NCBI GenBank assembly: GCA_964036045.1
Contig: OZ038378.1
Span: forward strand, 183,272,001-183,336,000
Reading direction: 5' to 3'
DNA from: Eutreptiella sp. 'Long Island Sound 2002'
Lineage: Eukaryota > Protista > Euglenida
DNA length: 64,000 bases
In this document: one piece after another, positions 1,701 through 54,045 of the stretch
Position numbering within the stretch: the first letter of the stretch is position 1
Layout: each line of letters opens with the position of its first letter
Notes under the pieces: generated by a model
What the model saw: only the letters and a program-made list of their open reading frames with translations
Database searches by the model: none
What the model was told of the DNA's origin: nothing
Position numbers and translations under genes: made by a program

Positions 1701-2105
1701 GTGGCGGGTGGGGGTCATTTAGGGCCCTGCCAAACTCCAGCCGCTGACCCACCCACCCACATCAGAAAACTTTTCCCTAGGGGAAAAATGAAACTCATTA
1801 AATGGGCCCGAAATTGAGGCACACAGACTTTTCTCTGGCCTCAGACCCCCTGGGGTGGGGTTTTTGCCACAAAGCAATAGCCTGATCACCTGTGGTACTT
1901 TGAGCTCAAAAAAGAACTGCCCCCGCAGCACCTGGACGGTGTTGTTGCAAGTTACAGTCTATGATAAATTCCCTGGACCAGGGTTGCAGCACCAGGGGGC
2001 GAGGGGCGTGACCACCCACTGGGTTTTTCGTTTCGGAAACAACGAAGGGCTGCAGAATGTTCCGCTGAGTGTAAGTCAGATTCCACGTCCAGTGCTGTCA
2101 TGCAG

Positions 2106-2207
2106 GTGATTCATGGTGAGCCTCAACCTCATGACAGACCAGACTTACTCAGTGGTGAAGAATGCAGCTGCAGCACCTGCTGCCCAGCCGCCAAAACCAA
2201 AACCTGA
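2106..2207 (+). CDS. Possible terminal exon (VIHGEPQPHDRPDLLSGEECSCSTCCPAAKTKT*)
   Basis: tgcAG acceptor at 2104-2105; phase 0 is compatible with the donor at 218; TGA at 2205-2207. Unverified. Confidence 0.25.
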   Translation: MIHGEPQPHDRPDLLSGEECSCSTCCPAAKTKT

Positions 2208-2835
2208 GCAAACATCACAGCAAATATCCATGGCTATTGTACAACAGCATAACGACCGAGTGAACACCTGTAACCGCGACTTCTCTTCAAACGGGCTGGT
2301 GCATGGCTCTTGGGGAGCTGCTTGGGAGGCTCGTGTATATATAGTGGGCGCCTTTGAAGAGATTTTGCTGATGATGGCGCAAAGCGTATCAGTGGACAAA
2401 GCAATGGCGCAGGGTGGGTAGCAGCAGTCCTACAGCCCCTCCAAACCACTGACCTCGAGCAAGGCGTCCCGTCGGAGGCGATCTGCATCGCATACTTGTA
2501 CACATGCGCATTCGCATACACATACACATACGCATTCGAAATCCCTGGCGATCTGTAACACAAAGATCTGATCGTCGCAAAGACAATTGCTGTACAGCTT
2601 GATCCAAAAAACAAAACAAAACGTGGGCTGCCGTGCACTCCTATGTGGGTGTGTGTCTCTCTGCGTGTGCATATTTTTGGTTGCGTATAGCATCATTTCG
2701 AGAGATGCTGGGCGCTCAGTTGAGCGTCATGTTCTCACTAACGCACTAGGCCCTGCTTCATCAGCGGTATGCTCTGCTTTATGTATGAGAACCGCTTCCT
2801 TCAATGTGCCGACAGTCACCAAAAGAACTTCGACT

Positions 2836-3033
2836 TTATGGAGCAAGCACGATCATCTTCTGGCCCTGCCGGGGCTGTGCCATCATATCTGCCACCGTCT
2901 CCCGCCATTTCAAGTAGTGGGCTGTCTCTTTGTGAGCTGCCGCCGCCTCCTCCGATTCGTACATTTCGTACAGAATGAACTTGCAGGGGTCTGCCGCATC
3001 TTGGATAACATCAAACCGCAGGTTGCCGGGCTC
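2836..3033 (-). CDS. lsrG: LsrG-like ABM (dimeric alpha+beta barrel) protein, last exon
   Basis: Translates [65 protein letters not shown], matching the LsrG pattern (GNLRFDV, YE.Y, HK.T.HY). Acceptor ctgtAG at 3034-3035, TAA at 2836-2838. Missed by the ORF track in this form. Confidence 0.9.
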
Positions 3034-3194
3034 CTACAGGTATGACGCGAAGAACATAATCCTGCCTGCTTTATCCTCCTGCCGCCCTTGGCCTTACGTG
3101 AAACTGACGAGCAACAGCAAGGATTCGAGGCTGGGGGTCAAACGAGCAAGCAACAGCAAGCAAACATGCGCCCCAACATCTCAACGGCATTTAC

Positions 3195-3446
3195 CTTAAT
3201 GGATTCGGCGTGGTTGGCCAGCGAGGCTGCTTTGAACTCCTCCACTTTCTCGGGCGTCACCCAAACGTGCACCATGGTCAAAGCAGCGGATGATGCAGCT
3301 CCTGCCATAGAGGCCATGTTGATGACTGGTGGAATGCTCAGGGACAAAACTTTTTTCTGCGAAAACACTCTGTGCCCCAGTGCGCCCAAGAGGGCACAAA
3401 GCGACATGATCAGCACCGTCAGCACCGATAGACTGGTATTGTTGAC
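3195..3446 (-). CDS. lsrG: LsrG-like protein, penultimate exon (hydrophobic presequence segment plus N-terminal ABM strand/helix)
   Basis: VNNTSLSVLTVLIMSLCALLGALGHRVFSQKKVLSLSIPPVINMASMAGAASSAALTMVHVWVTPEKVEEFKAASLANHAESIK; GTAAAT donor at 3194-3189, phase 0, joins ...ESIK|EPGNLRF; 161-nt GT-AG intron; acceptor cattAG at 3447-3448. Upstream exon not located. Confidence 0.85.
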
Positions 3447-3695
3447 CTAATGAGAGAGGGACATAATGATCCACAGTTGTAGGCAGGACGGTCCTGCAGC
3501 CGCACCCAGGGTTCCAACAGAAGGCGGGAAAGCATCCCCCTTCCGCAGCCCGAGCCTGCCGCCCAGCCACGGGGTCCTTTTCCGGCGCTGTTTCCTTTCT
3601 TTTCAAGCTGTAGACAGTGAAAAGCAAACTCCTCAGATGATCATGATCATTACGCCGCGTACGCCGCGAAGGTACAGGATCATATGTGTGTGGTA

Positions 3696-3808
3696 GGCGG
3701 TCCGCGGATCACTGATCCGCGGGGGTCCAAAAACCCCCCCTCCCCCCCCCACCGAATGATCCGCGGATCACGGATCACCCACCCCATAAACCCCCCCCCC
3801 CCACTGCC
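3696..3808. mobile_element. GATCC-rich MITE-like element, TA|GGCGGT...ACTGCC|TA
   Basis: 6-bp imperfect TIR flanked by TA (3694-95, 3809-10); perfect 14-bp palindrome TGATCCGCGGATCA at 3757-3770; same right end recurs at 5800-5807; related GATCC/poly-G blocks at about 13600-13640 and 13995-14100. Confidence 0.5.
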
Positions 3809-4046
3809 TAGCAAAATGATCCGCAATTTTCCGGATCACTAATTCGGACACGTGGACAGTCCTAGGGGCTCAAGAACCCGTGGTCGTGATGCGTACACAT
3901 ATGGAGTCATGTCAACACAAAGAAGGCGGGCACATGCAAAGCAAAGCAATGGAAATGTTGGATAACCTGGATAAAAACCCCGCCACCGGCATGGGAAAAA
4001 AGGTCTCCACTGTACATACACTGTACATTTTAGTTTTGAGTTTTTG

Positions 4047-4233
4047 TAGGGGAGTGGGAAGTGGGTATAGGGTTAGAGCGAGGCATTCGCCGAATCCGTT
4101 GTTTCTAAAGCGATTCCGATGACCTACTGTTAGTTTCGATTTTTTATGCTGGGGAGTAGGAAGTGGGTATAGGGTTAGAGCGAGGCATTCGCCGAATCCG
4201 TTGCTGTTCTCCTAAAGCGATTCCGATGACCTA
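4047..4233 (+). repeat. Tandem near-perfect duplication of an ~82-bp unit (period ~102 bp)
   Basis: ggggagt(g/a)ggaagtgggtatagggttagagcgaggcattcgccgaatccgttg...ctaaagcgattccgatgaccta occurs twice. Confidence 0.9.
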
Positions 4234-4361
4234 GAGGATTAGGAAATGGGTAAAAAGGTTAGACCTTCCGGACAAAGAGGGATGGGTGACCGCGTGAGCG
4301 ACATCGTAGTCGCCTTGCACGGACGCAAACATGGCGCGCCGCACGTCATCACTTTCATCAA

Positions 4362-5249
4362 TTAAAGACATGGGCTATATGGCACATATTGCAAATACAA
4401 CGTGCGTTGCACGTTGCACACACTCGCCAACACCCGCACGCAGTCACCCAACCAAAACAAATCGCGGCCCCGGTAGTGCTTACTCACAATGTCAAACTCA
4501 TTGAGCCGCGCAAAGTTTTTTTCCACACGTGCCCGATAGAATTGGTGGACACGGGTGAATTCCTTCTCCCAAAACGTCAAATTGCTACCTTTGTACGGCG
4601 GCAACGTGTTTGGGATTGAGATGTAGGCAAGATCCGCAAGGAAATATGCCTTGCCAAGCCCATACAATGCCAAATTTGGCCTATAAATGCGGGCCAAGGT
4701 GGCATCGCTCATTGCACCGGGATGCGGGCCCGAAAGATACGCATATAGTCCCAAGTGCGTCACGAATGCCTGGAATTTTGCTACATTTCCGGCATATTTT
4801 GGTTGGTACCTACTAGGCCCGCACGCTACATGCACCGGAAATGTATCAACACTCCCAACACATTGACCCGGAAAGTGCGGGATGTGATTTGATGGGTGCA
4901 ACAAATGTTTGGGTGAGATCTCAACCATGGCACGCACCAAATGTTGCACCCCGCAATGAATCAAGTGCCGTGCCCACCTATCACCGTACTTGCGTTGCCT
5001 TGGTGAAATGTCATCATAGGCACCTTGCCTGGGGCAACGCTTAAAGTACGACAACACCAACCAAAGCACTTCACGGCTGAGACCAGGCACATTGTCCATG
5101 TACTTCAAGTACACGGCCTCGCACACCGTTGGGTTGAAACCAACCTTGGGGATTACTGATAGCTTCCCGCCGGCGGCTTGAACCCACCAAGCCTCATCGG
5201 CAACGAGCAACCATTGCCAACGCAATTGCAAATGGGATGGCTCCGACAT
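4362..5249 (-). CDS. PIF/Harbinger-IS5-type DDE transposase (DDE_Tnp_4-like), intact, intronless, 295 aa from ATG
   Basis: Open frame without stops; catalytic-triad contexts GSVDTF, FLADLAY and RARVEK; G.H.G...D motif (SGPHPGAMSD); N-terminal helical segment WLVLSYFKRCP. Confidence 0.85.
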   Translation of the reverse strand: MSEPSHLQLRWQWLLVADEAWWVQAAGGKLSVIPKVGFNPTVCEAVYLKYMDNVPGLSREVLWLVLSYFKRCPRQGAYDDISPRQRKYGDRWARHLIHCGVQHLVRAMVEISPKHLLHPSNHIPHFPGQCVGSVDTFPVHVACGPSRYQPKYAGNVAKFQAFVTHLGLYAYLSGPHPGAMSDATLARIYRPNLALYGLGKAYFLADLAYISIPNTLPPYKGSNLTFWEKEFTRVHQFYRARVEKNFARLNEFDIVSKHYRGRDLFWLGDCVRVLASVCNVQRTLYLQYVPYSPCL

Positions 5250-5279
5250 TACACAAACTAGGCCACTAGTAGAAAAAGT

Positions 5280-5680
5280 AGAGAACACAAGGGCAAATGA
5301 TCCACCAAATCATAAGCAACAAAAATGATCCAAAGACGGAGCATGCACAAAACAAGATAGTGATTGACCAATTTGTGTTGCAAAAAATGATCCGAAAATG
5401 CAACCCCCAATTGTAAGCATCACGTAGAGCACGCACAAAGCAACATATTGATTGACCAATTTGTGTTGCAAAAAATGATCCAAAAATGTAACTTCCAAAT
5501 GTAAGTATCACGTAGAGCATGCACAAAACAACATATTGATTGACCAATTTGTGTTGCAAAAAATGATCCAAAAATGTATCTTCCAAATGTAAGTATCACA
5601 CAGCAACATAAAAAAAAAGGAACCAAAAATGGAAGTTCACTTGTTCCATCAATTTAACTTGCAAAAAATGATCCACAAGT
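5280..5680 (+). repeat. 88-bp tandem array (~3.5-4 units) directly upstream of the transposase
   Basis: tgattgaccaatttgtgttgcaaaaaatgatcc starts at 5361, 5449 and 5537 (period 88); partial units at both ends. Confidence 0.9.
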
Positions 5681-6288
5681 CCACACGACCATTGACACAA
5701 AGTTCAAAGTGCAATAAGCAAAATGGTCCGGAATGGTCCAAGAATGATCCAAAGTGATCCACGGATCACCACCCCCGAAACCCCCCCCCCCCCCTCCCCA
5801 CTGCCTAGTGTTTGGATCAAAAATGATCCGGATCACCCACCCCGAAAACCCCCCCCCCCCCCTGCCTGCCGCACAAACTACATGCAAACAGTTTGTCCAA
5901 GAGAGAGGGGGCTTCTGAACTACCTCAGCAGTGACAAAGCAACAAAACACTCATCAGTGATCATAGACTGCAGAGAAGCGTTGGGCAACGAATGTCCTAC
6001 TCTTATCTCAGTCCTTCATCTTTCGTGTTATGTACCCTCAATCCAGATTATGTATACATACACACATGTCACACCGGTCGAACCATGTCATAGCAAAAGG
6101 GGCTAGAAGAAGCTCAGGCACTTGGAACCTGTTTTCCCTCGTGAAACCAACCTATCAAACGTTTGAAACCTACAATCCTGTGCAATCTGAACCCGTGGAA
6201 AAGCCGGTACAGGATGGGGCGCCACCACTGGTCAGGATACCTTCGTACACCACATCCCCATAAAAGGGACCTCAGATTTACAACCACA

Positions 6289-6700
6289 TCAAGGCGTATA
6301 GGGTGTAAGGGTCAAGGCGTATAGAAGTGACTTGTAAAGCAAGGCAGGGAAGAGAGAGCGTAACACATTTCGGGCATTTGGAGAATGGGTATCTACCCAT
6401 TGTTCCCATTCAGCTGTCACGTGCCCACTCATCACCTCACTCAATTTCTGGACCACTCCTTTCCGTTGTAGACCAAATTTCAAATTCGCACCGTGTTGCA
6501 TTTCTGGGGGCTGTACATGTAAGATCATGGAAGCTTCGCCCCAAGTCGTTATTTGGCCGTGTGGTTCCCACTTCAACGGAATACTATATAGCACTTCAGT
6601 GATTTTTTCAATAACAAACAAGATGGGGGCCTCAAGAAAGGGGGAGATTCCCACCATAGCGAAATAAACATTATCTCGATACCTGGACATGATGACAACG
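6289..6700 (-). mobile_element. Reverse-transcriptase C-terminal remnant (RYRDNVY motif), possibly Penelope-like
   Basis: VIMSRYRDNVYF resembles RT motif C (RYxDD) followed by thumb-like LYSIPLKWE..WGE..; family assignment is inference. Confidence 0.45.
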
Positions 6701-7208
6701 GGTGTAGACTGTGCACTACATGTGTGTACACAGCACACGCCCAGCCATTTGCCACTGCTCATGCCAACTGCCCGGCCTCAGTGCAAGTTGAGGGAATCCG
6801 GAATCGGATGGTCTAGTTGGGTCTAATGATAGTGCCATGCGCCTTGCCCATAAAACTCGACGTGACGCAGGATCGGATGATGGGCAACGGGTCGCATTCC
6901 GAAGAAAACGGGGGCTGCGAGGGCTAGGCCATCAAGGGCTGCGAAGGTCTACAAGCGCGTGCAAAAACTCCTTAGACATGATCATATCCATTAGGCTGGT
7001 GCAGAAAAACGTGATGTAGTGCAAACATGCCCAATGTTGCTGCACCTGTTGTGTGTGGGCCGTTGTTATGTACACCGACACTATGCATAACCCCGAGCTT
7101 ACCATGAATTCCGCACATGCATGGGCGTGTCCAACATGCCCCGTGTATGCCTACCCTGTAAGCGCCCACTCTAATTTTTAGCAAGTTGTTTTGCAAAAAT
7201 GGATATGT

Positions 7209-8475
7209 TCATATAGGATCACACGAAAATGCATATGTTCATACAGGCCTGTTTAGGCATGCATGTTCACACATGTCCAAGTGTCAGATGCAAGTGAAGA
7301 TGCAAGTGAAGATGTAGAAAATTTGGTTCTTGTTGAGCCAAAGGGCTTTGTTGAACTCCCTCCAAAAGTGAAAAATGGCTAAATGTTGGGTCGGGTTGGG
7401 GTGAGTGTAGCTCCAATTGCTCGGAGCCCCCTTTTCCAATAAAAGGTGCCCCAAGGGTTGGGCTACGAGGCGAAACTTGGCAACGTGCCGGGGGATGGCA
7501 GTGGAGGGACCTATATTTGGCCGACGGGGTACTAGGGTAGCACGGGTAACAAAACTGCTCAGAAGTGCATCCAAGATTGAAGAGAGCAGCAGTGACTTGG
7601 TGCAGCACACCAAGGTTGACCGTTGTCATCAGACCTTCGTGCTTTGTGCCATGTACACCGTACCATCCAAAGAGGACCTCAGTCCTTGTTTTTCGTTGTT
7701 GCCTAACCATCGGCCATTATTATGTTAAACACCACGGACTATTTCTGCATGTCACGGCACACATGCATAACTCAAATTGCAAACACCACACGATCCTTTG
7801 GACGTGTTTATTGCACCATCGCCAAATGCACGAATCTGGCTTATCTCGTTCCATCACTTGCTTCAACATGCTGCCCACAGTTGACATAGTGCAATAACAC
7901 AAGAAAGCGAAAACCACATCCGCCAACACGGGTTGGTGATCAAGTTCAAAAAACAAAAATAGACACTTAGAAAATTGGGACGCCCTTTGGGGTTGCTGGC
8001 AATGGAGCCCTTGGGAGGACGGGGGTCTTGGGAACGCCGCTCTTTGGGTTGCCATGCGCACAAGAGAGCTTAAGTTGAAAGGCAGAACAACGCTAGCAAG
8101 AAGAGATACCTTGTGGCCAAAAACTTGACTCGGCGGAGTGTATCGTGGAATTGCATTTTGAGAAGTGTGAGTGTTGTGCGCTGCATTCTTGGAGCCGAAT
8201 GTGGCGGAGGGTAGAAACGGGGCACCGTCTGGGAGGGTTGAAATTGGTAGAATAGTTGGCAAGGTTGTTTGGGAGGTTGGTGCCGAAGTGACGTACTTAT
8301 TCTCAGCGTTCACTGTCGCGTGAAAGTGAAAGGCCATCAAGCAAAACAATCCCACACACCCAAGCCCGAAAGCCCAACGGGAATGGGTTGGGTCTTGAGA
8401 GTGGACCAAAAGGGTAGTGCTTGATCGGGTCATGGTGCAGAGCACAAGAATTGCTATGACGTATGATCCGTATGA
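7209..8475 (-). mobile_element. 1.27-kb segment bounded by imperfect inverted repeats and carrying a disrupted ~390-codon frame
   Basis: tcatataggatcacacg (7209-7225) vs reverse complement of 8460-8475, tcatacggatcatacg (14/17). ORFs 7720-8445 and 7267-7710 are the same frame separated by TAA TAA. No TSD seen. Confidence 0.35.
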
Positions 8476-25228: not shown

Positions 25229-28200
25229 ATGTCAACCAACTCCGATGGTGTCGATGTGGCCACGCGGGTCGAGGAGTTGGCGGCAGACCTTAAGGAGCAG
25301 ATCGAGGACGTGAAGAAAGAAATTGCACGGTCCAAAACCCCGAAAATCACGCAGCGCATGCCCGCCGCCCAATTGGAGGCCGTGCAGACGGAACAGCACG
25401 CGATCTTGCATGACCTCGAGCACATATTGGCCACGCTCAAGGAGAAGGAAGGCCACTGGACGCATCCTGAGCTCGACCAGCTCGAGGAAGACTTCCTTGC
25501 TGTGGACCAGCGCGAGGAGGCCGTGGACGATGCCATGCACAGCCTCCCATCCACTCCACCGGCTAACGGTCCCGCGCCCCCCGCGCATAACTCCGCACTC
25601 AATTCCAGGGCAGGGACCCAATCCCAAGCCCCGGAGGACGTCCTTGGGCCTGCGGGGGTTGAAGCGACGCCTTCGGTGGTCAGCGGACCGACCATTGCCT
25701 CGAAGGATCCCGTGAGCCCGAACCCGATGCCCGAGGGGGAGCAGGCACAGGGGCATCAACCCTCCGTTGTGCATGCTCAGGGTCAGGAGCAAGGGCTGCC
25801 TGTACCCGGGACGCAAGCGCGTGTCCATCCTGTCGCCCAGGCCAACGGTCAAGGGCAAAGGCCGGAGACGGGGTCTTTCGTTGGGGGGCCACCCCCAGTG
25901 CCGGTGCCGGAGGGGGCGTCGGAGGCCCGGCGGCTCGAGGTCCCCGTCAACTCCGAGAAGGGACTGCAAGACTCGCTGCTGAAGTTCCAGCAGCAGCTGG
26001 ACAACATGGATTTGGACAGCTCCACGGACACCGTGCCCCAAGTCGTCTCCGAAATCCACCCCTCAGACCTGCGGCAGGACATCCGCCTCAGTGACGAGGT
26101 GCCGCAGACCCCCGGGTCTTCGTCAAGCGCTGTACCGCAGGCCGCACTCGCGTCCGAAGGCATCGCGGCCCCGGAGCCGGACGCTGTGAGCCCCGGCCCT
26201 GCCCCGGGCCATGCGCCCGACCAAAGTCCGGCGTCGGGGGACGCACTGCCTCCCCCGCCGCAGGCCGGCCCGCCGGCAGCAACCCGGGCAGACCCACACA
26301 GCCCTCCGGATGCCGACGGGCTGCCGCTGGATGGTGCAGCGGAGGTGGATGTTGGTCCCGCAGATTTGCCAGAGGGTCCGATGTTCGCAGACGGGGCATG
26401 GCCACTGGAGGTGGTGCCTCAGGGCACGGCGGACCCGGACCCGCCAGCGGCTCCCGAGTCGCGGGCACTCCCACAATCGCTGCCTCAGGGCCAGTGCGTC
26501 GAGGCAGAGGCAGTGCACACGGGCGGTGCCGGACACACGCAGCCACAGGCCGGGGCTCAGGAGCAGCAGAGCGGGCGCTCGGAGGACGCAAGTGTACCAT
26601 CCCAGGCCCTTGCAGCAGCAGCAGCAGGGGAGGGGCAGGCCCCAATGGCCGGGTCCGTTGCGGAAAGCGAGAGGCCAATGCAGGAGCCACCGCCGCTGCA
26701 GCCGCAGTCGGAAGCTCCTCGCGATCAGCGGCTGCCTCAAGAAGTGCCGGCACCGGACGCCGCCCTACCGCCGGAGGTACCGGCGCCACCGGTGCCTCCA
26801 GAACCGCAGCACCCGCCACCGGCCCCGGCACACCCACCGCCCGAGTCACAGGAGCGGCACGTGTCAGAACAACACCAAGTGTCACAGCCACAGCCCGCAC
26901 CACCACCACCGCCAGAGCCAGAGTCACAGCCGCCCCCGAAGCAGCAGCCACAGCCACGGCTGCAGCAGCAGGCCCTGCAAACCGAGCCCCCGCCGCAGCC
27001 GCAGCCGCAGCAACCGTCGGAGTCCCCACAGATTTTGCCAGATTCATGTCACACCCAGCCACATCTCCCCCCACAGCCTCACTCTCGCTTGCAGCCCCAG
27101 ATCCAGATGCAGCCTGAGCCAGAGCCTCATCCACATGCACAGCCACAGCCTCAAGCACAGCCACAGCACCCTGCACAGCCCCTCCATGAGCCAGAGCCTA
27201 CGCCGCAGCCACAGCCACAGGCACGACCCGAACACGTGGACGGGCCCTCCAGCCCCTCCTCCCGCGACGCTGGCCCTGATGCGGCGCCGCACCACAGCGT
27301 CCCCTCGGGTCCCACCGACCGCAGTGACCCCCCGGGCCCGGCAGGTCTACCGGACACCGACAGTGCACCGCAGGACACCGACAGTGCACCGGCAGGTCTT
27401 GCGGACACCGGCGCCTCTCTGGAGGCCCCCTCCGCGCCGCTCCCCCCGGGGCCGCAGCCGTCGGGGTACTCCCACGCGCTGTTCGCGCACGGCCTGTTCG
27501 GGCCGTACCCCTTGGCCGGCCTCCCGCCGGGCGGCCCAGCGGGCGCTGTGGCGCCGGCCGGTCTGCCGCTGGGCCCGGGCCCCGTGCCCCCGCTCGGCTT
27601 TCTGCCCCCGCCGGTGCTGTTCGCCGGTGTCCCCTACGTCCCGGCCCCTGCCCCCCACACCCCTCCGTCCCCGATCCTCCCCCTGGCCCCGGCAGAACAC
27701 ACCGACCCGCCTCCGCCCCCCGACGACCACCGCCCGGACTCTCGGCCGCAGCCTCAGGACGTCGGCCTCCCCGAGGGCGAGCCGATCTCCGCCGCGCGCG
27801 CGACACCCCCGCCGCACGCACCGCACCCCGCGGCCCTCCTCCCGCAGCCGGGCATGCCCCTCGTTACGCTGCCGCCCGCGTACCCGCCCGCCCCGCAGCC
27901 CCTCGGGGCCGGCTTTCCGCCGGCCCCGTTCCTGCCCGCGTGGCACCCGTGGGCCCCCCAAGGCCAGTCCGCGACCCCCACGGCCTCTGCCGCGACCCAA
28001 ACCCCCGAAACCCCCCGCACCCCGTCCGACGCCCCGCCGTCCCCGACGCCCGCCGCGGCCGTCCCGGCGACCAAGGCCCCGCCCCCGCTCCGCGATTCGT
28101 CGGCCGTGAATGAGCCGGGCGCCCGGAGCGACCGGGAGAGCGACCTGGACCAGCGCGAGGCGGCGCTGCGGGCGCGGGAGGTGCAGTTCGAGCAGCTGCT

Positions 28201-28677
28201 CACGCTGTGGCACCGGTCGTCCCAAGGCGACTTCCTGCGGGTGCTGCAGCAGCTGCGCGGCGGGGCCGGCCCCGAGGAGCCCCCCGCGACCGGCCCCGGC
28301 CCCGCCGCCCCGGCCCCCGCGACCGCGCTGCCGCTGCCGCGGCAGAAGCGCGCGTCGACCGGCGTCTCCTCCCGCGCCGCCGTGGCCCTGCCGCGCGCGG
28401 CCCCGCGGCAGGAGCTCATGGACGCGGCACAGCGGGCGCTCGCCTGCCACATGGTGACGACGGAGATGGGCGTCCCGCTGGCCGCGCTGCGGCTGCGGCG
28501 CTCCATGGCCCTCGAGCCGTACCGCGCACGGCCAGTGCGGCGCCGGAAGGCCCGCCCGGTGCCGAAGCTGCGGGCGGCCGACGCCTGCGATCGGACCCCC
28601 AGCGTCGCGGAGCTCAGCTCGGCGGTCCAGAGCCCCTCGTGTGCCCCGTGGAGCATGCACCGCCAGCCTCCTTTCGG
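25229..28677 (+). CDS. Large Pro/Gln/Ala-rich orphan protein, exon 1 (N-terminal coiled-coil/helical bundle)
   Basis: 3.45-kb open frame with strong GC3 bias; heptad-like N-terminus (VEELAADLKEQIEDVKKEI); PQ repeats at 26860-27230; GTAACG donor at 28678. Confidence 0.8.
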
Positions 28678-29226
28678 GTAACGCCCAGCGGGCGGTTGGG
28701 TACAGATTCCCACGCGCGCACGCGTCCATGTGTCCGCGGGGGGGGGTCGGCTGTCGGTTAGTTTAGGGTTGTGATCAGGGGAAGGCTAAAGTTTTGCCTC
28801 TTTGTTGCTGTTTATGGGCTCCAAGGGTGTGCATACACGGCGAATCGAAGGAGGAGGGTGCTTCCTTTTGCAGCCATCCCCAACAAGTTTTTTCTGGAGG
28901 CCACACTTTTCTAGGAGCCTGTTGCTGCAAGGGCCTGGTGGGATTGTGGGCTGTGCGTTCAGCAAGAAACCCTGACCCCATATTTTTTTCCAATGGAGTG
29001 GCCTGTTCAACCATCACCAGGTGCTGTTTCCGCAGCTTTGGGCTGATTTTGTACCGCTGTGTGCGCAGGCGGGGGGAGGGAGTACATAGGCCATACAAAG
29101 CCATCAGAGCAACCGAATCCAAGTCATTGCGGTACCTCGCTCCATCCCAACCCAAACCGACGTTTTTTCATGCGTTCCATTCCCACCCACCCCTGCCTTT
29201 CCGCCGCTAATCTGACCCTGTGGCAG

Positions 29227-29275
29227 GACGAAACAGTTCGATCCCACAGTGTACATACTCCGGTGCTTTGCTTGA
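29227..29275 (+). CDS. Predicted terminal exon of the 25229 gene ((G)TKQFDPTVYILRCFA*)
   Basis: ctgtggcAG acceptor at 29225-29226; the phase-2 junction gg+g matches the donor at 28678; TGA at 29273-29275. Confidence 0.5.
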
Positions 29276-30394
29276 GTGTATTTACCGCAAGGGCTGGTGG
29301 CTGACAGATCTTCGAGAGGGTTGCAGCCCATCAGCCCTGATCATGGTTGTAGCACGGCATTGTCGAAGCACCACGACCGCGTCTGACTGTGATTTGTTGG
29401 CCGCAGCTTTTGTGGTCGCGCCTGCAAGACGACATGTTTGTGATCTGGTTGTCGCGGGAAAAGGGGCCGGGTCATGCTTGTGAAGAGTCGCTGCTCCTCG
29501 CAACAGCATTTGTGCCTGCGACTGCAATCCACTTCTATTTGTTTGCATGTGGTTGCATGAAGCGACAGGCAATCGTAGGCCCAAGAGGTCCAGGGTGGCC
29601 CCAAGGGATACTAAAAGGATACGTCTGCAGAGGCGGGGCGCAATAATCGTGGGACGTTGGGGGCTCTGGGGATCGCCCATGCATTCTAGATACCTCTGCC
29701 CTTCGTCGCCCTGTTGATCTTCCTCCCCCCCGTTCCCCTCCTCTTGACCGTGGTAATCCCCCTCTCTCTTGCACAAGCACTGCCAAAGTCAGGGAAAGCG
29801 ATGGACAGAGATCCTGTCCTTCGCCCATCTACTCGAATTGGGGGCCATTGATTGACAGCATAACCACTGAGACAGGAGCGTCCATCGGGTGCTGAAGGAA
29901 GGGAGGTGCAATCCCCACACTGTGATTGAATCGCCAGCTGCACTGGCCCTTGGATGCCACACCTTGTGTGGCGAATATCACCTGTGCCGGCCTCATGGTA
30001 CGCCCCCCCACCACCACAAAGTGGATCACCAGGTCCATGTCCGCAAGGTCGGCAAGTAAGTATTGGTGATCATTGTGTAGAGGGGGCAAATCTGCAAAGT
30101 CTCTGACAGTAACACTTCTAACTCCAATTGAGACCTACTTACAAGGCCATAGACTCGTTATGCCTCGTACCCCATGCAATTATTGACCTCATGTTGGATT
30201 TGTTAATAGTTCCGCTGCAGACCACAGTATTTTGCACCATCTTGGCACCACTTTAGGTGGCAAGATGCGGCGTTTTCTGTTTCTTGTGGTATGTTGGTTG
30301 TGCTTTGCATTTAAATTGGGCAATGCTATTCACGCATTCCCATGTGCCCGGAGCAAACAAGTAGGAGAGCAAAGATACATACTTCCTTCTGATG

Positions 30395-41818: not shown

Positions 41819-43074
41819 GTATGCCGCTGACCAACCGCCTGCACGCCTGCACCCTCTGCAGCCTCGGCAAGCCTCCACACGCCTCTTTACCCTCCACAGG
41901 GCGTTTTTCAGTGGACAAGTTCTTTTCGTTTTTTTGCCACTCACAAAGCGTTGACCTGCCTGGCCGTTGGTTATCCTCCGTCCGCCATCGCTTACCTAAA
42001 CTACTGTTGGTTGCCCTCCAACCGCCGTTGGTTGCTTTTCAAGGGCCGTCCAATTGTCTGCCTAAATAATGAGCTGGAGGACGGAAGTTTTTTTATATTT
42101 TAATCAAAACCTTCCTGACCCTCCACTGCCCTCAACATTCATCCTCTCCATCACCGATGTCAGCTCCTGCTGTAGCTGCTGCTTGATCATATGCCTGCCC
42201 CCGTGGTCCGTTTGGTTCCAGCCGTATTGGTTTTGTCAGCGCGGAGATGCACGCACGTTGATGGCTCGCCGCATGATTATGGGCCATCGCAGTCCCTCAC
42301 TGCCCCTGTGCAGTCCCATGCCCATCCCTCCAAGCGACCCTCCAAGCGCCCACACGGCACCCCGTCCCCTCCATGCCCTTCCACGGCGCTCCGGAGCACC
42401 CCACACACCTGCAGTACTCCGTGCCTCCCTGGGCGCACCCACAGCAACCGCTGCAGGGGTAGGGGGGCACTGCGGCTGGGGCAGGGTGCACAGCTGCAGG
42501 GGGCAGCGGCCATGCGCAGGGGCTGGGGGCTCTGCCGCTGGGGTGGAGCGCTTCGCTGCAGGTGGCAGGGTGCACAGCTGCAGCGGGTAATAGGGCAGGA
42601 TGCACTGCTGCTTGGGCTGCCACGGGGGGGGGGGGGGGGCGCGAGGGTGCAACCTCCCCCTGCAGCGGTGCACCGCGCACCCATGCCGAGGTACATCCTG
42701 CCCCGGCGGTAGCACACCCTGCCCCTGCAGCAGTGCCTCATGCCCTTGCAGCTGTGCATCCTGCCCCCGCGTCACTACATTCTGCCCTTGCAACAGTGCA
42801 CCCCCACCCCCCAACCCACCAAGCAATAGCACAGTGTGCAGTAGCCCCATGCGGCAGCACAGTGTGCAAACCCGCTGCACCCTGCCCCAGCAGCAGTGCC
42901 CCATGCCCCAGCGACAGTGCATCCAGTCCTTGTGCATCACACCCGGCCCTAGCAGTGCACTCCAGCAGCAGTGCACCTTGCCCCTGCCCCTGAAGCAGTG
43001 CACCCTCCCTCAGCGCCACTGCATCCTAACCGGCAACAGTGCGCCCTGCCCTTGCAGCACTGCACATTGCCCCC

Positions 43075-43205
43075 CTCACAACCCTCCTCACAACCCTCTA
43101 CACAACCCTCTACACAACCCTCTACACAACCCTCTACACAACCCTCTACACAACTCTCTACAACCCTCCACACAAACCTCTACACAAAACCCTCTACAAC
43201 CCTCT
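43075..43205 (+). repeat. 12-bp microsatellite (ACAACCCTCTAC)n, with degenerate cagcagtgcaccctgcccc repeats at 42700-43070
   Basis: About 6 near-perfect tandem units plus decayed units just before the exon 5 acceptor. Confidence 0.9.
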
Positions 43206-43250
43206 CTGGCCCTCAACCCTCCACACTTCTCAACAACCTTTACACGTTAG

Positions 43251-44253
43251 GTCTATGGAGGGAAGGGACTCGCTGCAGCCCTTGTGGCAGCGGCGCATGG
43301 GTATGTTCCCGCCACGGGCCTTCGGGGGAAACCCCGTGGAGATGCAGATCCTGGTCACGCACACCCGCAGCAAAGCGCTGAACGCCAACGACGTGTGGCA
43401 AGTGTGCATGGGGCACATGAATCGGGAGTGGGTGTTGCAGGCGAAAGATCTGCCGTCCTTCGTTGCTGCATCCTCTACGTCGCTCGCTGGTCCCGGCTCC
43501 GCCCCGATCCCACTCGGTGTCGCAGCCCCAGCGCCGGCCCCAGCGCCGGCGACCGCGACCGGCCTGCCTCCAGCTGCTACTACCGCCCCAATCGCCGGCA
43601 CTGCCACATCAGACGAGACAGCCGCGGTGCCCGCAGCCACCAATGCCGCAGCCCCAGAGGGCACAGCAGCATCAGCCGCCGCCACCACAAGTGGAGCACC
43701 CGTAGCCTTGCCCAGTACGTCCAGCTCTACCTCCAGCTCAGACCTGCCCCGGGCTGCCGCTGATGAAGATCCTGCAGCAACGGCCGCCGCCTCCCCCGAC
43801 CCCTCCGCCCCGACTGACCCCTTGGCACCCGCTGCCTCCGCCTTGAGCGGCGGCTCCGTCACATCCGCGGCCACTCCTCCGGACGCTCCACCGTCCTGCT
43901 CGACAGCGGCCTGCGCCTCTGCTGCATCCTCCGCCTCCGCCTCTGTCTCCGCGACCGCCGCGACACCGGCACCAGCAGCGCCTGCGGGCTCCTCCGGTGC
44001 TGCCGCCGCCCCGGCGCTGGGCCCGGTGCTCGAGCCCAGCAGGTTAACACCCGAGCACCCGTGCTGCCTGCGGTGTGCCGGGGAGGTGTTCGCGGAGCTG
44101 GTGTTTCAGTACCGCGTGGCCCTGCCCAGCTCGGAGCTACCGGCGGCGGCGTCCAGTCGGCCCTACTGCTGGTACGGCAAGGAGTGCCGCACGCAGAAGC
44201 ACAATCGCGCGCACGCGGAGCGATACAATCACGCATGCAACTCCATACGGTGA
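43251..44253 (+). CDS. CHFR: CHFR-like, exon 5 (rest of Cys-rich domain, Ala/Ser/Pro insert, PBZ finger)
   Basis: CCLRCAGEVFAELVFQYRVALPSSELPAAASSRPYCWYGKECRTQKHNRAHAERYNHAC parallels the human CHFR C-terminus (F.EL..QYR..IP.SELP...SRP.C..G..CRTQ...HA...NH.C). Exon sum is 2517 nt = 838 aa plus stop. Confidence 0.92.
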
Positions 44254-49760: not shown

Positions 49761-50158
49761 CCCCCCTGTCGGTGTGCGCAACTCAACGTCTCCTTTTCCC
49801 GCCAACGACGATGAGTCCTCTATCACTGGTATCGGCTGGCAGGCACCGTGCTTCCAACAGCGAGCTTTGGGGCACGCTTGTTGGGTTCTCCTGCCCCATT
49901 CTGCGGCGCCTGTTGGTCATTGGTGGTATTGGTGTCAGCTTCTTTACGTCTGCTGCGGGACGCATCAGGGCAACCAGGATGATCCCGGGAACAGCCGGTG
50001 ACGCGGGGATGATGAGACGGTGCACAAGTTTCAGGTGGTACGGCAAGCACCGGTGCCAATGTGCGCGCGCGCGCGCGCGCACGCACACCCCTCCCGGCTC
50101 CTCCCGCCCCTCGCCTCGTGCGCACCGCGCGCCACTCACCGCGCACACTGCACGCCAG

Positions 50159-51358
50159 GCAGCCAAGACGAAGGACCAGCTAAAGGACAAGGTCAAGGCC
50201 GGGCGGATTTGCATGCAGGAGCTGAAGGAGATGGGGCTCCTTCAGGAGGAGTTCGGGGGCTTCACGGTGTTGCCCACCCTGACCATCTGCAAAGCCCAGA
50301 TCTGCAACATCGTGTTCCAGCAGGCCATGGCCCTGGAGAGCCACGGCAACCTCATGGAGGCGGCGGGGCTGCTGCAGCGGCTGGTCGCCTATAACGGCGA
50401 CTACATGTACGCCCGGCTCGGCTGGGCGTGGGTGCTCCTGAAACTCGGGAGGAAGGACCCCAGTAGCCTGCGGAGGGCACTGGCCGTGCTGAACAAGGCG
50501 GTGCAGACCGACCCCGACCACCCGGGGGCCTACGCCCTGTCGGCCGTGGCGCACTGCCGCCGGGGCGAGAACCGCGCGGCCCTGGCCTCGCTCGGGGCCT
50601 ACGCCGCGCGGCAGCCGCAGCTGTGGCGGTCCGCCGAGGCCGGCCCGAGCCCCACGGTGGCCCTGATGTACCTCCTCCGCGGCGAGATCAAGCGGGCCCT
50701 CGCCGACGGGGACGCCGCGGCCGTCGCGGACGCCGCGGCCGACGCCGACGTGGCCCTGCGGCTCGACGCCGACGGGGCGCAGTACGTGGGCAAGGGCCTG
50801 GCGGACGACGGGCACGTCTGGGCGCTGCTGACGCGGTACGTGGACCTGCTGCCCCCCGCCCTCGCGCACTGCCTCGACGGCCTGCCCCCCGACGAGGCCG
50901 ACCCGGACTCCGTCTCGCGGCTCGAGGCGCTGACGGACTTCGTGCGGCTGTTCGCCGGGGCGCCGCCGGCGGAGGAGGACGATGGGGACGCGCTGCAGAT
51001 CGGCGACCTCCCGGCGCAGCTCGGCGCCGCCGAAGCCGTGTTCTGGGACGAGCTGCGGATGTCGTCGGGCGGGGCGGAACCGACGGGGGAAGGGGCGGGG
51101 CAGTCGCCGGACCAAACGGCGCAGGTGGACGCACCGGGCGCAGCAGCCGTGCGCAGCAGCAGTGCGGGGGCCGGCGACCGCATGGCCCTCGCCGTGACTG
51201 AGGCGCGCGCTGAGGACGACCCCCGCTTCACTTATAGTCAGGGGAGGCGCCTGACGATCCTGGAGCGGCGGCTCAGCAGGTCCTCCTTCTTTGCCCCCTC
51301 TGTGTCGCGGCCGGGCACTGTCCCCCCTCCTGCCCCTTCAGATTCCTCGGGGGGTTGA
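50159..51358 (+). CDS. TPR-repeat protein, exon 2 (gene ~442 aa)
   Basis: cgccAG acceptor at 50157-50158, phase 0; TPR-like helical pairs (AAGLLQRLVAYNGDYMYARLGWAWV; ALAVLNKAVQTDPDHPGAYALSAVAH); very high GC3. Confidence 0.8.
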   Translation, partial: AAKTKDQLKDKVKAGRICMQELKEMGLLQEEFGGFTVLPTLTICKAQICNIVFQQAMALESHGNLMEAAGLLQRLVAYNGDYMYARLGWAWVLLKLGRKDPSSLRRALAVLNKAVQTDPDHPGAYALSAVAHCRRGENRAALASLGAYAARQPQLWRSAEAGPSPTVALMYLLRGEIKRALADGDAAAVADAAADADVALRLDADGAQYVGKGLADDGHVWALLTRYVDLLPPALAHCLDGLPPDEADPDSVSRLEALTDFVRLFAGAPPAEEDDGDALQIGDLPAQLGAAEAVFWDELRMSSGGAEPTGEGAGQSPDQTAQVDAPGAAAVRSSSAGAGDRMALAVTEARAEDDPRFTYSQGRRLTILERRLSRSSFFAPSVSRPGTVPPPAPSDSSGG

Positions 51359-52077
51359 AAGAAGGTGGATGCTTCTGAGGGGATTCGATGCTTGCACTGC
51401 CTATGCTGCCAGTGCTGCAGGGGTGTGTGGTCGTCCGCCTGCTGCCATGCCTTGTGCACTGTCACGTCACTCGAAGGCAATGTCAATGCCATCGACATAT
51501 GCCCTGTGTTGTGTGACCTGGACGTGTAGACCATGTGGCATTGTGTTGTTGCGTCTTTGCCCTTGAGATCCCCAAGAGCGAGCAGCAGGGCGTCCAGCTG
51601 TCCCATCGGGCTGTGCCTGACCGTCAGCCCGGGGCACCCGCGTGGTCCACCGCTGGATTCAAATCACCTGCGGTTGGACCCTGCCTGACCATCGATTTCC
51701 ATGAGCCCGATGGAGTCGGATCGAGAGAGGCCCGTGCCCACGTCCGAGGCACGACCGCGTCAGCGACCACACAAGGAGACCTCGTGCCGGAGCAGGCCGA
51801 GCCTCTGCAACACTTGTTGCTGACGGCTTCACAGCGCCCTGTGACAGTCGCAGCAACACGCTGCCGAGCACGCCCCTGCCCCGCCCTCCCTCCTTTTCTC
51901 CGCGGCGTTTGAGGGTTCTGTCCACACGGTCCTCTGGATTTGCGCTGCGGGTCCACGGTGCCCCTCATGTTCTCGTGCCACGAATACTTGTGCCCTGCCT
52001 CTTTGCTAGGGGCCTTACCCTCCATCTCCCCTCCGTCCCTTTTTCCCAGGCAACCGGGATTGGACGGGCCGAACGCC

Positions 52078-54045
52078 ATGCAGGACAAGCCCGAAATATT
52101 GCCACTGAGCCGGCAGGACGTGCAGAAGGTGAACGCGCTGATTGACGGCAAACCGATCGGGGTTGATGGTCACAAGCATTCGCTGAGAAAGTTCAAGCGC
52201 CTGGCGTTGGCGGCCCGCAGAGAGGCACTGGAACCCAAGCGGGGGAGCACTGCCAGCGGTGGAGGCGGTCCGGCGCGCAGGCCCAGTGAAGTGAAGCAGC
52301 AGCAGCAGCGCAGGCCCAGTGAAGTGAAGCAGCAGCAGCGCAGAAGCCCTGCGGAAAGGTGGCACCAGGCCATACACATGGTGCAGGAAAAGGGCGCGAA
52401 AAGTAAGAAAAAGCGCCCGTCGATGGACCACGCGGCGAAGTCGGACCCGAGGTCTCCCAAGAGGGCCATGAGCCCCAAATACAGATCGGACCCGGGGAGT
52501 CCCAAGCCCAAGCACAAGCCGTGGAGCCCCCGGGCCGGCCGGCGCTGGAGAGGGATGAGGGTCGTGGTGTCCGACGACTCCAGCAGCAGCGAACCGGAGA
52601 CGTGGTGCGGGCCGCCGGTCCCGCGCGTCCCGCCGCGGGTGCCGGTCCCGCCCCTCAAACTGTGGGTGCTCGGGATCGGGAAGTCGCCCTCGGAAGCGGG
52701 GCTGAGCGAGCGGGAGGCGGGGCTGAGCGAGTCGGACGTGAGCGAGTCGGACGTGGCGCCGGAGCCGGCGAAGAAGGCGGAGGAGGCCCTGGAGCCGCTG
52801 GTGTCCCCGATCGACGGGGCGAACACCCCCGAGGCCCCGAAGGCGCCGTCGAAGGCCAAGGGGGACGACGGGGGGCTGCAGGCACTGATCTCCGACTTCT
52901 CCTTCGGGTCGACCATGCTGGCCAGCGAGGGCAGCAGCGTCCTCTCCGGGCGGAAGAAGGGCCGGCACGACGCTCTGAAGCGGCGCATCATCTCCAAATG
53001 GGTGAAGCAGACCGCCCCGAAAGGCCCCCCGGCCTTCCCAAAGCCCGCGCCCTCCTCCCCGAAGCCCGCGGGCAGCCCCGTGCACCCGCACGGCCCCGCC
53101 CGCACGCCCAAGCGCGGCGCCCACGCGCGGCCGCCCTCCCCCGCGGGGCCCGCGCCGGACATGTGCACGGGCGACATGGCGGACGCGGAGGCGGAGTGCG
53201 CGGCGCTGGCGCTGCACGACGCGGTCGTGCGGGACACGGACTATGCGGCGTTGCTGGCGGTTGGGGCCAACGGGGAGCAGATGCTGGAGGTCATCAGCCG
53301 CCAGGCCGCGTGCTGGGCCGAGAAGGTGCGGCGCGAGACGCGCGCCGCCGCGCCCCGCAAGGGGCCCCTGAGCCCCCCGGGCCTGAGGGTCCCCCGCTTC
53401 GGGCCCCCGGACCCAACGCCGGGGACCCACATGTCCACCGCGGACCCGCAGGTCCGGGGGCAGCACCTGCAGCCGGCCTTTGTGGCGCACCGGCGGCCGC
53501 TCGTGCAGAAGTTCAACACCGTGGGCTGCCTGGGGGGGGGCTGGCGGCGGCTGGAGCAGGCCAAGGGCAAGGGGGGCCGCAGCCCGTCCGTCGGGGCGGC
53601 GCCGCTGGACAGCACGACCCCCGACGAGGCCGAGGCGTCGCAGGAGGAGGCGTGGCTGCGGCAGCACATGCGGGGCACGCCCCTCGGCGGTGCAAAGAGG
53701 TACCCCATTGGGACCCCGGGCCAGACCGACGCCGCGTCCCGGGCCGCGGCGCCAGGGTCGAGCCTGGCGGAGGGCGCCGCCGGGCCGGCGGTGGCGGCGC
53801 CCACCGCGGCGGCGGAGGTGGCGCCGGCCGCGGTCGCGCCGGTCAAGTCGGCCGCTGATGTGGCGCCGGGTTCGGCTGGTGACGTTGGCGGGGGCCGGGG
53901 CCGGGACAAGGTGCAGGTGTTGGGGGTCAGCAGCCAGGCGGCGCAGCGCGTGCCGCTGAGGCGGCGCCGCCGGTGGATCTACCACCGTTCCAGCCTTGAG
54001 CTGATTGCGGTGCCGCGCGTCGCAGGGGCGTGCCCGGCGGGTTAG
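52078..54045 (+). CDS. Low-complexity Pro/Ala/Ser/Lys-rich orphan protein (~655 aa)
   Basis: 1.97-kb open frame with GC3 bias; ttttcccAG acceptor at 52048-52049 upstream (cis exon or trans-splice site unresolved); internal duplication RPSEVKQQQ(Q)R. Confidence 0.7.
   Translation: MQDKPEILPLSRQDVQKVNALIDGKPIGVDGHKHSLRKFKRLALAARREALEPKRGSTASGGGGPARRPSEVKQQQQRRPSEVKQQQRRSPAERWHQAIHMVQEKGAKSKKKRPSMDHAAKSDPRSPKRAMSPKYRSDPGSPKPKHKPWSPRAGRRWRGMRVVVSDDSSSSEPETWCGPPVPRVPPRVPVPPLKLWVLGIGKSPSEAGLSEREAGLSESDVSESDVAPEPAKKAEEALEPLVSPIDGANTPEAPKAPSKAKGDDGGLQALISDFSFGSTMLASEGSSVLSGRKKGRHDALKRRIISKWVKQTAPKGPPAFPKPAPSSPKPAGSPVHPHGPARTPKRGAHARPPSPAGPAPDMCTGDMADAEAECAALALHDAVVRDTDYAALLAVGANGEQMLEVISRQAACWAEKVRRETRAAAPRKGPLSPPGLRVPRFGPPDPTPGTHMSTADPQVRGQHLQPAFVAHRRPLVQKFNTVGCLGGGWRRLEQAKGKGGRSPSVGAAPLDSTTPDEAEASQEEAWLRQHMRGTPLGGAKRYPIGTPGQTDAASRAAAPGSSLAEGAAGPAVAAPTAAAEVAPAAVAPVKSAADVAPGSAGDVGGGRGRDKVQVLGVSSQAAQRVPLRRRRRWIYHRSSLELIAVPRVAGACPAG

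Follow-up and report, generated by a model that had tools for sequence, protein, structure and literature searches.

Why should a marine euglenid alga carry a relative of LsrG, the bacterial enzyme that isomerises phospho-DPD (P-DPD, the phosphorylated form of the quorum signal autoinducer-2, AI-2)? The question is raised by a gene in a 64,000-nt stretch of the genome of Eutreptiella sp. 'Long Island Sound 2002' (contig OZ038378.1, positions 183,272,001 to 183,336,000 of the forward strand; this whole stretch is referred to below as the window). An initial annotation, made from the letters alone, had proposed that a horizontally acquired quorum-signal-degrading enzyme was retargeted to the plastid, either for damage control of 2,3-diketo sugar phosphates or for action on bacterial AI-2. 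The explanation that best accommodates our results jointly is that the gene encodes a plastid-targeted, Bacteroidota-derived, LsrG-like isomerase or tautomerase of dicarbonyl or ketol compounds that works with a reductase, and we give this combined reading a probability of roughly 0.55. The gene itself would then represent an ordinary euglenid event, in which a bacterial gene gained introns and a plastid presequence. Its family may hold the wider interest: a large LsrG-like subfamily, automatically labelled 'autoinducer-2 degrading', is tied to a carbonyl reductase across many bacterial phyla, and the reductase fusions and plastid-type signals found in several algal lineages point to a two-enzyme step, so far undescribed, that would belong to carbonyl metabolism or metabolite repair.

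The gene lies in the nuclear genome on the minus strand of the window and has three coding exons (A, B and C; Table 1). Among words sampled from positions 2700-3700, about 55% are present in RNA-type sequencing runs and all are present in DNA runs. We aligned three RNA runs and one DNA run (X8) to positions 1800-3690; the runs consist of assembled contigs, and the RNA runs come from two studies (X1 and X3 from one, X4 being an estuary metatranscriptome). Intron 2 is skipped exactly by one contig in each of X1, X3 and X4 and is retained in X8. All three RNA contigs depart from the genome at position 3448 and continue for another 352-353 letters; the 30 visible letters of this loose end have a unique match at 8112-8141. 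According to the RNA contigs, the AG at 3448-3447 is the true 3' splice site of intron 1, with its GT donor at 8109-8108. This long intron falls between a transit-peptide-like region and a second hydrophobic domain, while intron 2 interrupts the conserved ABM domain between K192 and E193 (on the minus strand, exon B ends ...ESIK and is followed by GTAAAT, and the acceptor CTGTAG precedes exon C). The initial annotation had placed a GT-AG-spliced gene at 2836-3446: the last two coding exons are exactly where it put them, and the first had escaped it. It had also supposed that the mRNA extends upstream of the sequence MASMAG, which is indeed the case: exon A adds most of the transit-peptide-like region and, ahead of it, the start codon and a signal-peptide-like helix.

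Exons were searched one at a time, and a word search with the genomic open reading frame (ORF) that starts in exon A led to a 225-aa protein (P0278) that bears the JGI name 'autoinducer 2-degrading protein'. The cluster of this protein includes a 257-aa sequence (P0279) from Eutreptiella braarudii (EukProt P007166, MMETSP0809), which we then took as the whole-protein reference; its three segments are identical to the translations of the three exons, with zero mismatches. We place the start at M1 because there is an in-frame stop upstream of this ATG (8520-8518) and no in-frame ATG between the two. Slightly upstream of M1, an AG at 8455-8454 that stands behind a pyrimidine-rich stretch could be a trans-splice acceptor, a placement made from the genomic letters since contigs of this kind show no 5' ends. 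The gene is real, expressed and spliced, and it encodes a 257-aa pre-protein. Bacterial contamination as the source of the gene is ruled out by the two spliceosomal introns removed in RNA, by the transposon that sits within intron 1 and by the eukaryotic presequence.

The LsrG-like domain and the reductase partners of its relatives

The mature part of the protein (residues 164-257) is a 94-residue ABM domain. Exon C alone matches the Pfam ABM family (PF03992) at 2.4e-11 (44.1 bits, cut-off 23.1), and its best match in the PDB is 2omo from Nitrosomonas europaea (1.5e-23), followed by the LsrG structures 2gff (8e-13) and 3qmq (5e-10). The last 28 residues of exon B align to residues 26-53 of 2omo and exon C to the adjoining residues 54-110, so the domain is collinear across intron 2. 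Exon B alone gave no meaningful family or PDB match, because it is dominated by the presequence. AlphaFold, given a 39-row alignment, predicts a ferredoxin-like fold of about 100 residues with a pLDDT of 97 and the element order E-H-E-E-H-H-E. When this model was submitted to Foldseek, the TM-scores were 0.96 to 2omo (root-mean-square deviation 0.7 Å), and 0.95 to E. coli LsrG, with many other ABM structures at 0.8-0.9; sequence identities in these matches were 54% for 2omo, 39-44% for LsrG (39% for the E. coli protein) and at most 30% for generic ABM proteins.

By sequence, LsrG is the closest characterised relative of this domain. N186, E215, H226 and H231 (in the motifs ANH, LYE, AHK and AHY) align with N25, E54, H65 and H70 of E. 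coli LsrG, and this tetrad, which the initial annotation had already picked out, is invariant in our 24-row and 39-row alignments with bacterial relatives and E. coli LsrG. The four E. coli residues are reported to be the catalytic ones (Marques et al. 2011). The sole NCBIfam match of the mature domain is the LsrG equivalog model NF007791 (EC 5.3.1.32), to which the domain scores 84.8 bits, the whole protein 81.4 and E. coli LsrG 191.8. Since 84.8 bits is below the curated cut-off of 135, we class the protein by sequence as LsrG-like and not as an LsrG equivalog.

The gene neighbourhoods of the bacterial relatives offer a different view of what such a protein might do. In the first two bacterial contigs that we examined, the ABM gene overlaps a downstream gene for an iron-type alcohol dehydrogenase (Fe-ADH) by 7 nt. 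We surveyed 80 genome loci, 71 of which had sufficient downstream sequence: an Fe-ADH homologue lies directly downstream of the ABM gene in 57 of those 71, spread over many phyla and including N. europaea, the source of 2omo. Two further loci have an Fe-ADH gene at another place within the locus, and in the exceptional loci the neighbours are unrelated. P0088, the bacterial row closest in our tree, has the same arrangement of ABM followed by Fe-ADH. The typical cassette (loci L001, L002 and L006-L084) consists of a 102-aa LsrG-like ABM gene that overlaps or abuts an Fe-ADH gene of about 390 aa. We found no description of it in the literature searched, in which the matches for ABM together with Fe-ADH looked unrelated by title and abstract. 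The dehydrogenases themselves score 170-200 bits against NCBIfam, where the equivalog cut-offs exceed 420 and none is reached; among solved proteins, methanol dehydrogenase and lactaldehyde reductase come closest, at about 130 bits. In 83 loci of the nearest bacterial relatives there is no homologue of lsrK, lsrR, lsrB or lsrF, a result that is not directly applicable to a eukaryotic gene. Because these closest bacterial relatives are coupled to an alcohol dehydrogenase and not to quorum-sensing genes, the real job of the enzyme is probably the handling of reactive carbonyl compounds.

These observations bear directly on whether the protein could be a true LsrG that isomerises phospho-DPD derived from bacterial AI-2. 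The four conserved positions, the single NCBIfam match, the lack of any closer characterised relative and the automatic JGI name would all suit that idea, but the score falls far short of the cut-off that E. coli LsrG easily exceeds, identity to the E. coli enzyme is 39%, and the nearest bacterial relatives sit beside an Fe-ADH gene, with no lsrK, lsrR, lsrB or lsrF nearby. The substrate of LsrG is produced by the kinase LsrK, and no LsrK-type kinase was seen here. The AI-2 reading is unlikely, the weakest of those that we considered, and we would give it hardly any weight; with it we set aside the proposals that a quorum-signal-degrading enzyme was retargeted and that it acts on bacterial AI-2.

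In eukaryotes the same partnership appears within single polypeptides. Among the long eukaryote-type proteins we found six fusions of the form ABM-ABM-Fe-ADH and three of the form ABM-ABM-AKR, in which the partner is an aldo-keto reductase (AKR); Vitrella, Epipyxis and a diplonemid are among the carriers. In the Vitrella protein, the fused Fe-ADH part is 48-49% identical to the bacterial operon partner and is more distant from any solved alcohol dehydrogenase. That two unrelated kinds of NAD(P)H-dependent carbonyl reductase stand beside the same ABM domain suggests two-step handling of a carbonyl compound by the pair. The mature Eutreptiella domain would then be a cofactor-free isomerase or tautomerase whose substrate is an alpha-dicarbonyl or a ketol, perhaps a sugar phosphate, with N186, E215, H226 and H231 carrying catalysis; it would work beside an NAD(P)H-dependent carbonyl reductase, an arrangement seen for its relatives in bacteria and algae, and would have no part in the processing of AI-2 signals. 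Two points count against this functional assignment: isomerase activity is inferred from homology and gene context only, and no similarity to Fe-ADH or AKR was found within the 64-kb window (eukaryotic partners need not be linked).

A third possibility is suggested by the family name, namely that the protein is an oxygen-dependent ABM monooxygenase of the quinol, heme-degrading or polyketide type, located in the plastid. It belongs to the Pfam ABM family, some sources call its relatives 'quinol monooxygenase YgiN', and an ABM-fold protein of the E. gracilis plastid proteome is described in monooxygenase terms. Generic ABM structures, however, are at most 30% identical to the domain, compared with 39-44% for LsrG and 54% for 2omo, and it is with LsrG that the domain shares its conserved polar tetrad. 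The subfamily moreover occurs in Bacteroidales, Smithella and Desulfobacteraceae, lineages known as strict anaerobes, and its presence there disfavours a reaction that requires oxygen. We hold a monooxygenase to be improbable.

An isomerase or tautomerase paired with a reductase leaves room for the damage-control proposal, which survives in general form as a dicarbonyl or ketol isomerase working with a reductase. In its original form, damage control of 2,3-diketo sugar phosphates, it is compatible with the reductase partners, and a plastid role in handling carbonyls or diketones would be plausible. The subfamily is common in Bacteroidales and Rikenellaceae, which are not known to have Rubisco, so its substrate cannot be specific to Rubisco. 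The chemistry invoked in the initial annotation is documented: ribulose-5-phosphate gives DPD spontaneously (PMC2443158), and pentodiulose bisphosphate is a misfire product of Rubisco that can be dephosphorylated by CA1Pase (PMC9833046). One could go further and suppose that an LsrG-like ABM protein and an NAD(P)H-dependent carbonyl reductase (Fe-ADH or AKR) form a widespread, undescribed two-step repair module for P-DPD-like 2,3-diketo sugar phosphates, whether formed spontaneously from pentulose phosphates or as Rubisco by-products, and that algae brought this module into their plastids on several independent occasions, the Eutreptiella case going back to its own transfer from Bacteroidota. 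So specific a scenario is tentative and, on balance, unlikely.

Two characterised or solved proteins help to place the domain beyond the lsr system. The best solved match, NE0621 of N. europaea (PDB 2omo, annotated as 'DUF176' and as a putative antibiotic biosynthesis monooxygenase), belongs to the same subfamily, and its locus (L079) has the Fe-ADH gene directly downstream; it differs in being a bacterial protein of about 100 aa that has neither presequence nor introns. Together with the short plastid-type algal version described here, this solved structure provides concrete proteins for study. LsrG proper, (4S)-4-hydroxy-5-phosphonooxypentane-2,3-dione isomerase (3qmq from E. coli, 2gff from Y. 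pestis), shares the fold and the tetrad, whereas the relatives of the Eutreptiella domain lie outside lsr operons and are paired with Fe-ADH. ArqI of Pseudomonas aeruginosa (PA0709) is also an LsrG-like ABM protein, encoded in a glyoxal-induced operon with the glyoxalase gene gloA2, which functions in alpha-oxoaldehyde detoxification. This provides a second link between a branch of the LsrG-like fold and alpha-oxoaldehydes, although ArqI is only about 29-30% identical to our domain, forms a hexamer, inhibits PQS (Pseudomonas quinolone signal) synthesis and has a glyoxalase and not a reductase as its partner.

Origin of the domain

A word search with exon C returned over 3000 proteins, the best of which are 102-aa bacterial proteins with 72-80% identity over the exon. 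Over the domain, identity to such 102-aa bacterial proteins is 63-73% (71% for P0006, a named Bacteroidota protein); for the eukaryote-type homologues that we compared and for unassigned longer relatives it is 34-62%, and for named eukaryotes at most 55%. In a scan of species-representative genomes, relatives were found in Bacteroidota, Nitrosomonas (including N. europaea), Thiobacillus, cyanobacteria, Chloroflexi, Planctomycetota, Verrucomicrobiota and others.

The family is not unique to Eutreptiella among eukaryotes: there are chromerid, cryptophyte, diatom, chrysophyte and green-type picoeukaryote homologues, several with plastid-type N-termini. An exhaustive search of representative sequences recovered many longer relatives with two ABM domains, and cluster membership ties these to Guillardia theta, MMETSP transcripts, Vitrella brassicaformis, the chrysophyte Epipyxis and the diplonemid Namystynia. 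More two-ABM clusters lie on compact eukaryotic contigs that resemble those of green picoeukaryotes, and a further word search added the diatoms Corethron and Helicotheca as homologues. The tandem and fusion proteins (for example Vitrella CEM19686.1, Guillardia XP_005838089.1 and A0A6U5WJ66, and those of Epipyxis and Namystynia) belong to the same LsrG-like subfamily, and their reductase partner is that of the bacterial operons. They differ from the Eutreptiella protein in having two ABM domains, often fused to the reductase, and at 35-53% identity they fall into separate clades, whereas Eutreptiella has one domain of the bacterial type.

In a quick tree of 145 rows, the Eutreptiella domain groups with Roseivirgaceae, Cyclobacteriaceae and further Cytophagales in a clade of 11 rows (SH-aLRT 96), and in a more careful tree of 53 rows it again falls in a Bacteroidota-rich clade (91/86). 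Approximately unbiased (AU) tests, in which the groups were named after the tree had been seen, reject a grouping with the 12-row algal clade (p = 0.0005) and weakly reject a grouping with the green-type domain (p = 0.015). The best reading of these sequence comparisons is a separate transfer from a Bacteroidota-like donor, apart from the tandem-domain homologues of other algae; the intron and the presequence exon would have been gained after that transfer. Of the horizontally acquired quorum-signal-degrading enzyme envisaged in the initial annotation, the bacterial origin is thus the half that is favoured, given the identity of up to 73% and the Cytophagales-rich clade.

Weighing against a separate transfer, the origin alignment is short, at about 100 columns, and the AU test fails to reject a sister relation to the long-branched diplonemid homologue (p = 0.30). 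The latter result leaves standing the alternative that the gene descended vertically from the euglenozoan host, its likeness to Bacteroidota being due to slow evolution or to transfer in the reverse direction; that Namystynia has a homologue at all would suit such a history. Identity to the diplonemid domain is however 53%, as against up to 73% to the Bacteroidota-type 102-aa proteins; in the diplonemid protein, a tandem ABM is joined to an AKR; and the bacterial clade that surrounds the Eutreptiella domain has the typical ABM and Fe-ADH operon. We therefore see only a small chance that vertical descent is correct.

The N-terminal extension and its predicted destination

Residues 1-163 have no counterpart in the bacterial homologues, and since the starts of the latter align with residues 164-166, we regard this segment as an addition. 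Exon B carries the end of the transit-peptide-like region, the second hydrophobic helix, a linker (residues 133-163, in which NMASMAG lies) and, at 3195-3281, the initial 29 residues of the ABM domain. The presequence exon has no detectable relatives apart from the gene itself.

We calculated hydropathy as in the plastid-proteome study of Euglena gracilis (Kyte-Doolittle, window 13) and set the helix boundaries from it. The first peak reaches 2.21, centred on residues 26-33, and the second 2.82, centred on residues 118-127 within the segment 114-132. Between the two, residues 40-113 contain 27% S+T, 12% P, 9.5% A and only 2.7% D+E (16% in the mature part), with a net charge of +2. In the E. 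gracilis study, pre-proteins with both a signal peptide at residues 9-60 and a stop-transfer signal at 97-130 form class I, which accounts for 47% of well-supported plastid proteins, and in their intervening region S, T, A and P are abundant, acidic residues are scarce and the net charge is positive. The Eutreptiella protein has a signal-peptide domain within 9-60, a stop-transfer domain within 97-130 and an intervening region of the published composition, from which we infer that the extension is a class I euglenid plastid presequence and predict a plastid location. The plastid-type presequence guessed at from its last part is thereby seen in full, with the signal-peptide helix, the transit-peptide-like region and the second hydrophobic domain all present. 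By analogy, the first helix would direct the chain into the endoplasmic reticulum (ER) and the second would anchor the precursor in transport vesicles with the enzyme part on the cytosolic side; the S/T/P-rich region would then drive import into the plastid, and the presequence would be cleaved somewhere around residues 150-163.

The same layout would also fit an ordinary type I membrane protein that stays in the secretory pathway, whether in the ER, in the Golgi or at the cell surface, and never reaches the plastid. Its signal peptide would be cleaved, its S/T/P-rich luminal stalk might be glycosylated, and a single membrane helix would leave the ABM domain on the cytosolic side. The predicted topology equals that of a class I precursor in transit, and basic residues (HRVFSQKK) follow the helix. 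Two further observations favour such a protein over a plastid one: the gap between the helices, about 74 residues (40-113) by the hydropathy boundaries, exceeds the published 60 +/- 8, and just 25% of the plastid proteins predicted in silico for E. gracilis were found in its plastid proteome. The class I rules were derived in Euglena (E. gracilis and E. longa) and not in Eutreptiella, and it counts against the plastid reading that the RNA runs, being contigs, show neither the 5' end nor a spliced leader. Opposed to the secretory reading are the positions of both helices, within the published ranges, the transit-peptide-like composition of the region between them, and the company that the protein keeps. 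By eye, plastid-type N-termini are present in several homologues: in the Vitrella fusion an F comes after a signal peptide whose last residues are ...ALA, in Corethron an F comes after ...ARA, Guillardia shows a long extension in addition to a signal peptide, and the green-type proteins have extensions rich in S, T, R and A. The diplonemid homologue has no N-terminal extension by the same inspection; the diplonemid has no plastid. These N-termini are a lead that suggests a plastid role for the family beyond Eutreptiella. In addition, the E. gracilis plastid proteome contains a protein (sequence 13092 in file 2 of bioRxiv 10.1101/573709), listed there under unknown function, for which HHpred gives an ABM-type (monooxygenase-like) match and for which both a signal and a transit peptide are predicted; it is a candidate orthologue only. 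A word search among proteins of 141-450 aa found no E. gracilis orthologue, which is no proof of absence. On balance we consider a secretory-pathway membrane protein rather unlikely and prefer the class I plastid presequence. We found no joint mention of LsrG and Euglena in the literature searched, and the matches for LsrG with chloroplast looked unrelated by title and abstract.

Coordinates and further features of the window

Table 1. Positions in the window of the parts of the LsrG-like gene, in order of transcription
Feature	Position	Strand	Remarks
5' untranslated region (UTR), end	~8453-8463	-	upstream of the exon A ATG
Start codon ATG	8433-8431	-	within exon A
Coding exon A, residues 1-108	8110-8433	-	translation equals P0279 1-108
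Signal-peptide-like helix, residues 20-39	8317-8376	-	exon A, after the N-region
Intron 1, 4663 nt, phase 0	3447-8109	-	GT..AG; RNA contigs and splice sites
Coding exon B, residues 109-192	3195-3446	-	translation equals P0279 109-192
Second hydrophobic domain, residues 114-132	3375-3431	-	Kyte-Doolittle peak; hydrophobic helix LSVLTVLIMSLCALLGALG
Intron 2, 161 nt, phase 0	3034-3194	-	GT..AG; skipped in RNA contigs
Coding exon C, residues 193-257 (2839-3033) and stop TAA (2836-2838)	2836-3033	-	translation equals P0279 193-257
3' UTR, ~730-800 nt	2032-2835	-	RNA contig ends differ: 2032, 2083, 2110

Within the 3' UTR, position 2229 is G in the RNA contigs of X1 and X3 and C in the genome, in the DNA run X8 and in the metatranscriptome X4, probably a strain difference.

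Intron 1 holds, in the orientation of the gene (minus strand), a 308-aa ORF for a DDE_Tnp_4 (Harbinger-type) transposase at 4362-5288, within an element at 3694-5807. Near one end of this transposon, at 4040-4230, inspection by eye shows a stretch of about 75 nt that is present as two direct copies, each with ...GGGTATAGGGTTAGAGCGAGGCATTCGCCGAATCCGTTG... in it.

The same intron contains, at 7955-7972 on the minus strand and about 140 nt downstream of the exon A donor, the 18-mer TTCTAAGTGTCTATTTTT, which is unique in the window, where none is expected by chance. It resembles the euglenid spliced leader and may be what is left of a spliced-leader sequence or of a retroposed copy. The Euglena spliced leader is absent from the 64-kb window at up to 3 mismatches, and Rfam gave no match in the window.

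In base composition, the window stands at about 50% G+C, apart from three segments (26001-30000, 42001-44000 and 50001-54000) in which G+C rises to 64-73%.

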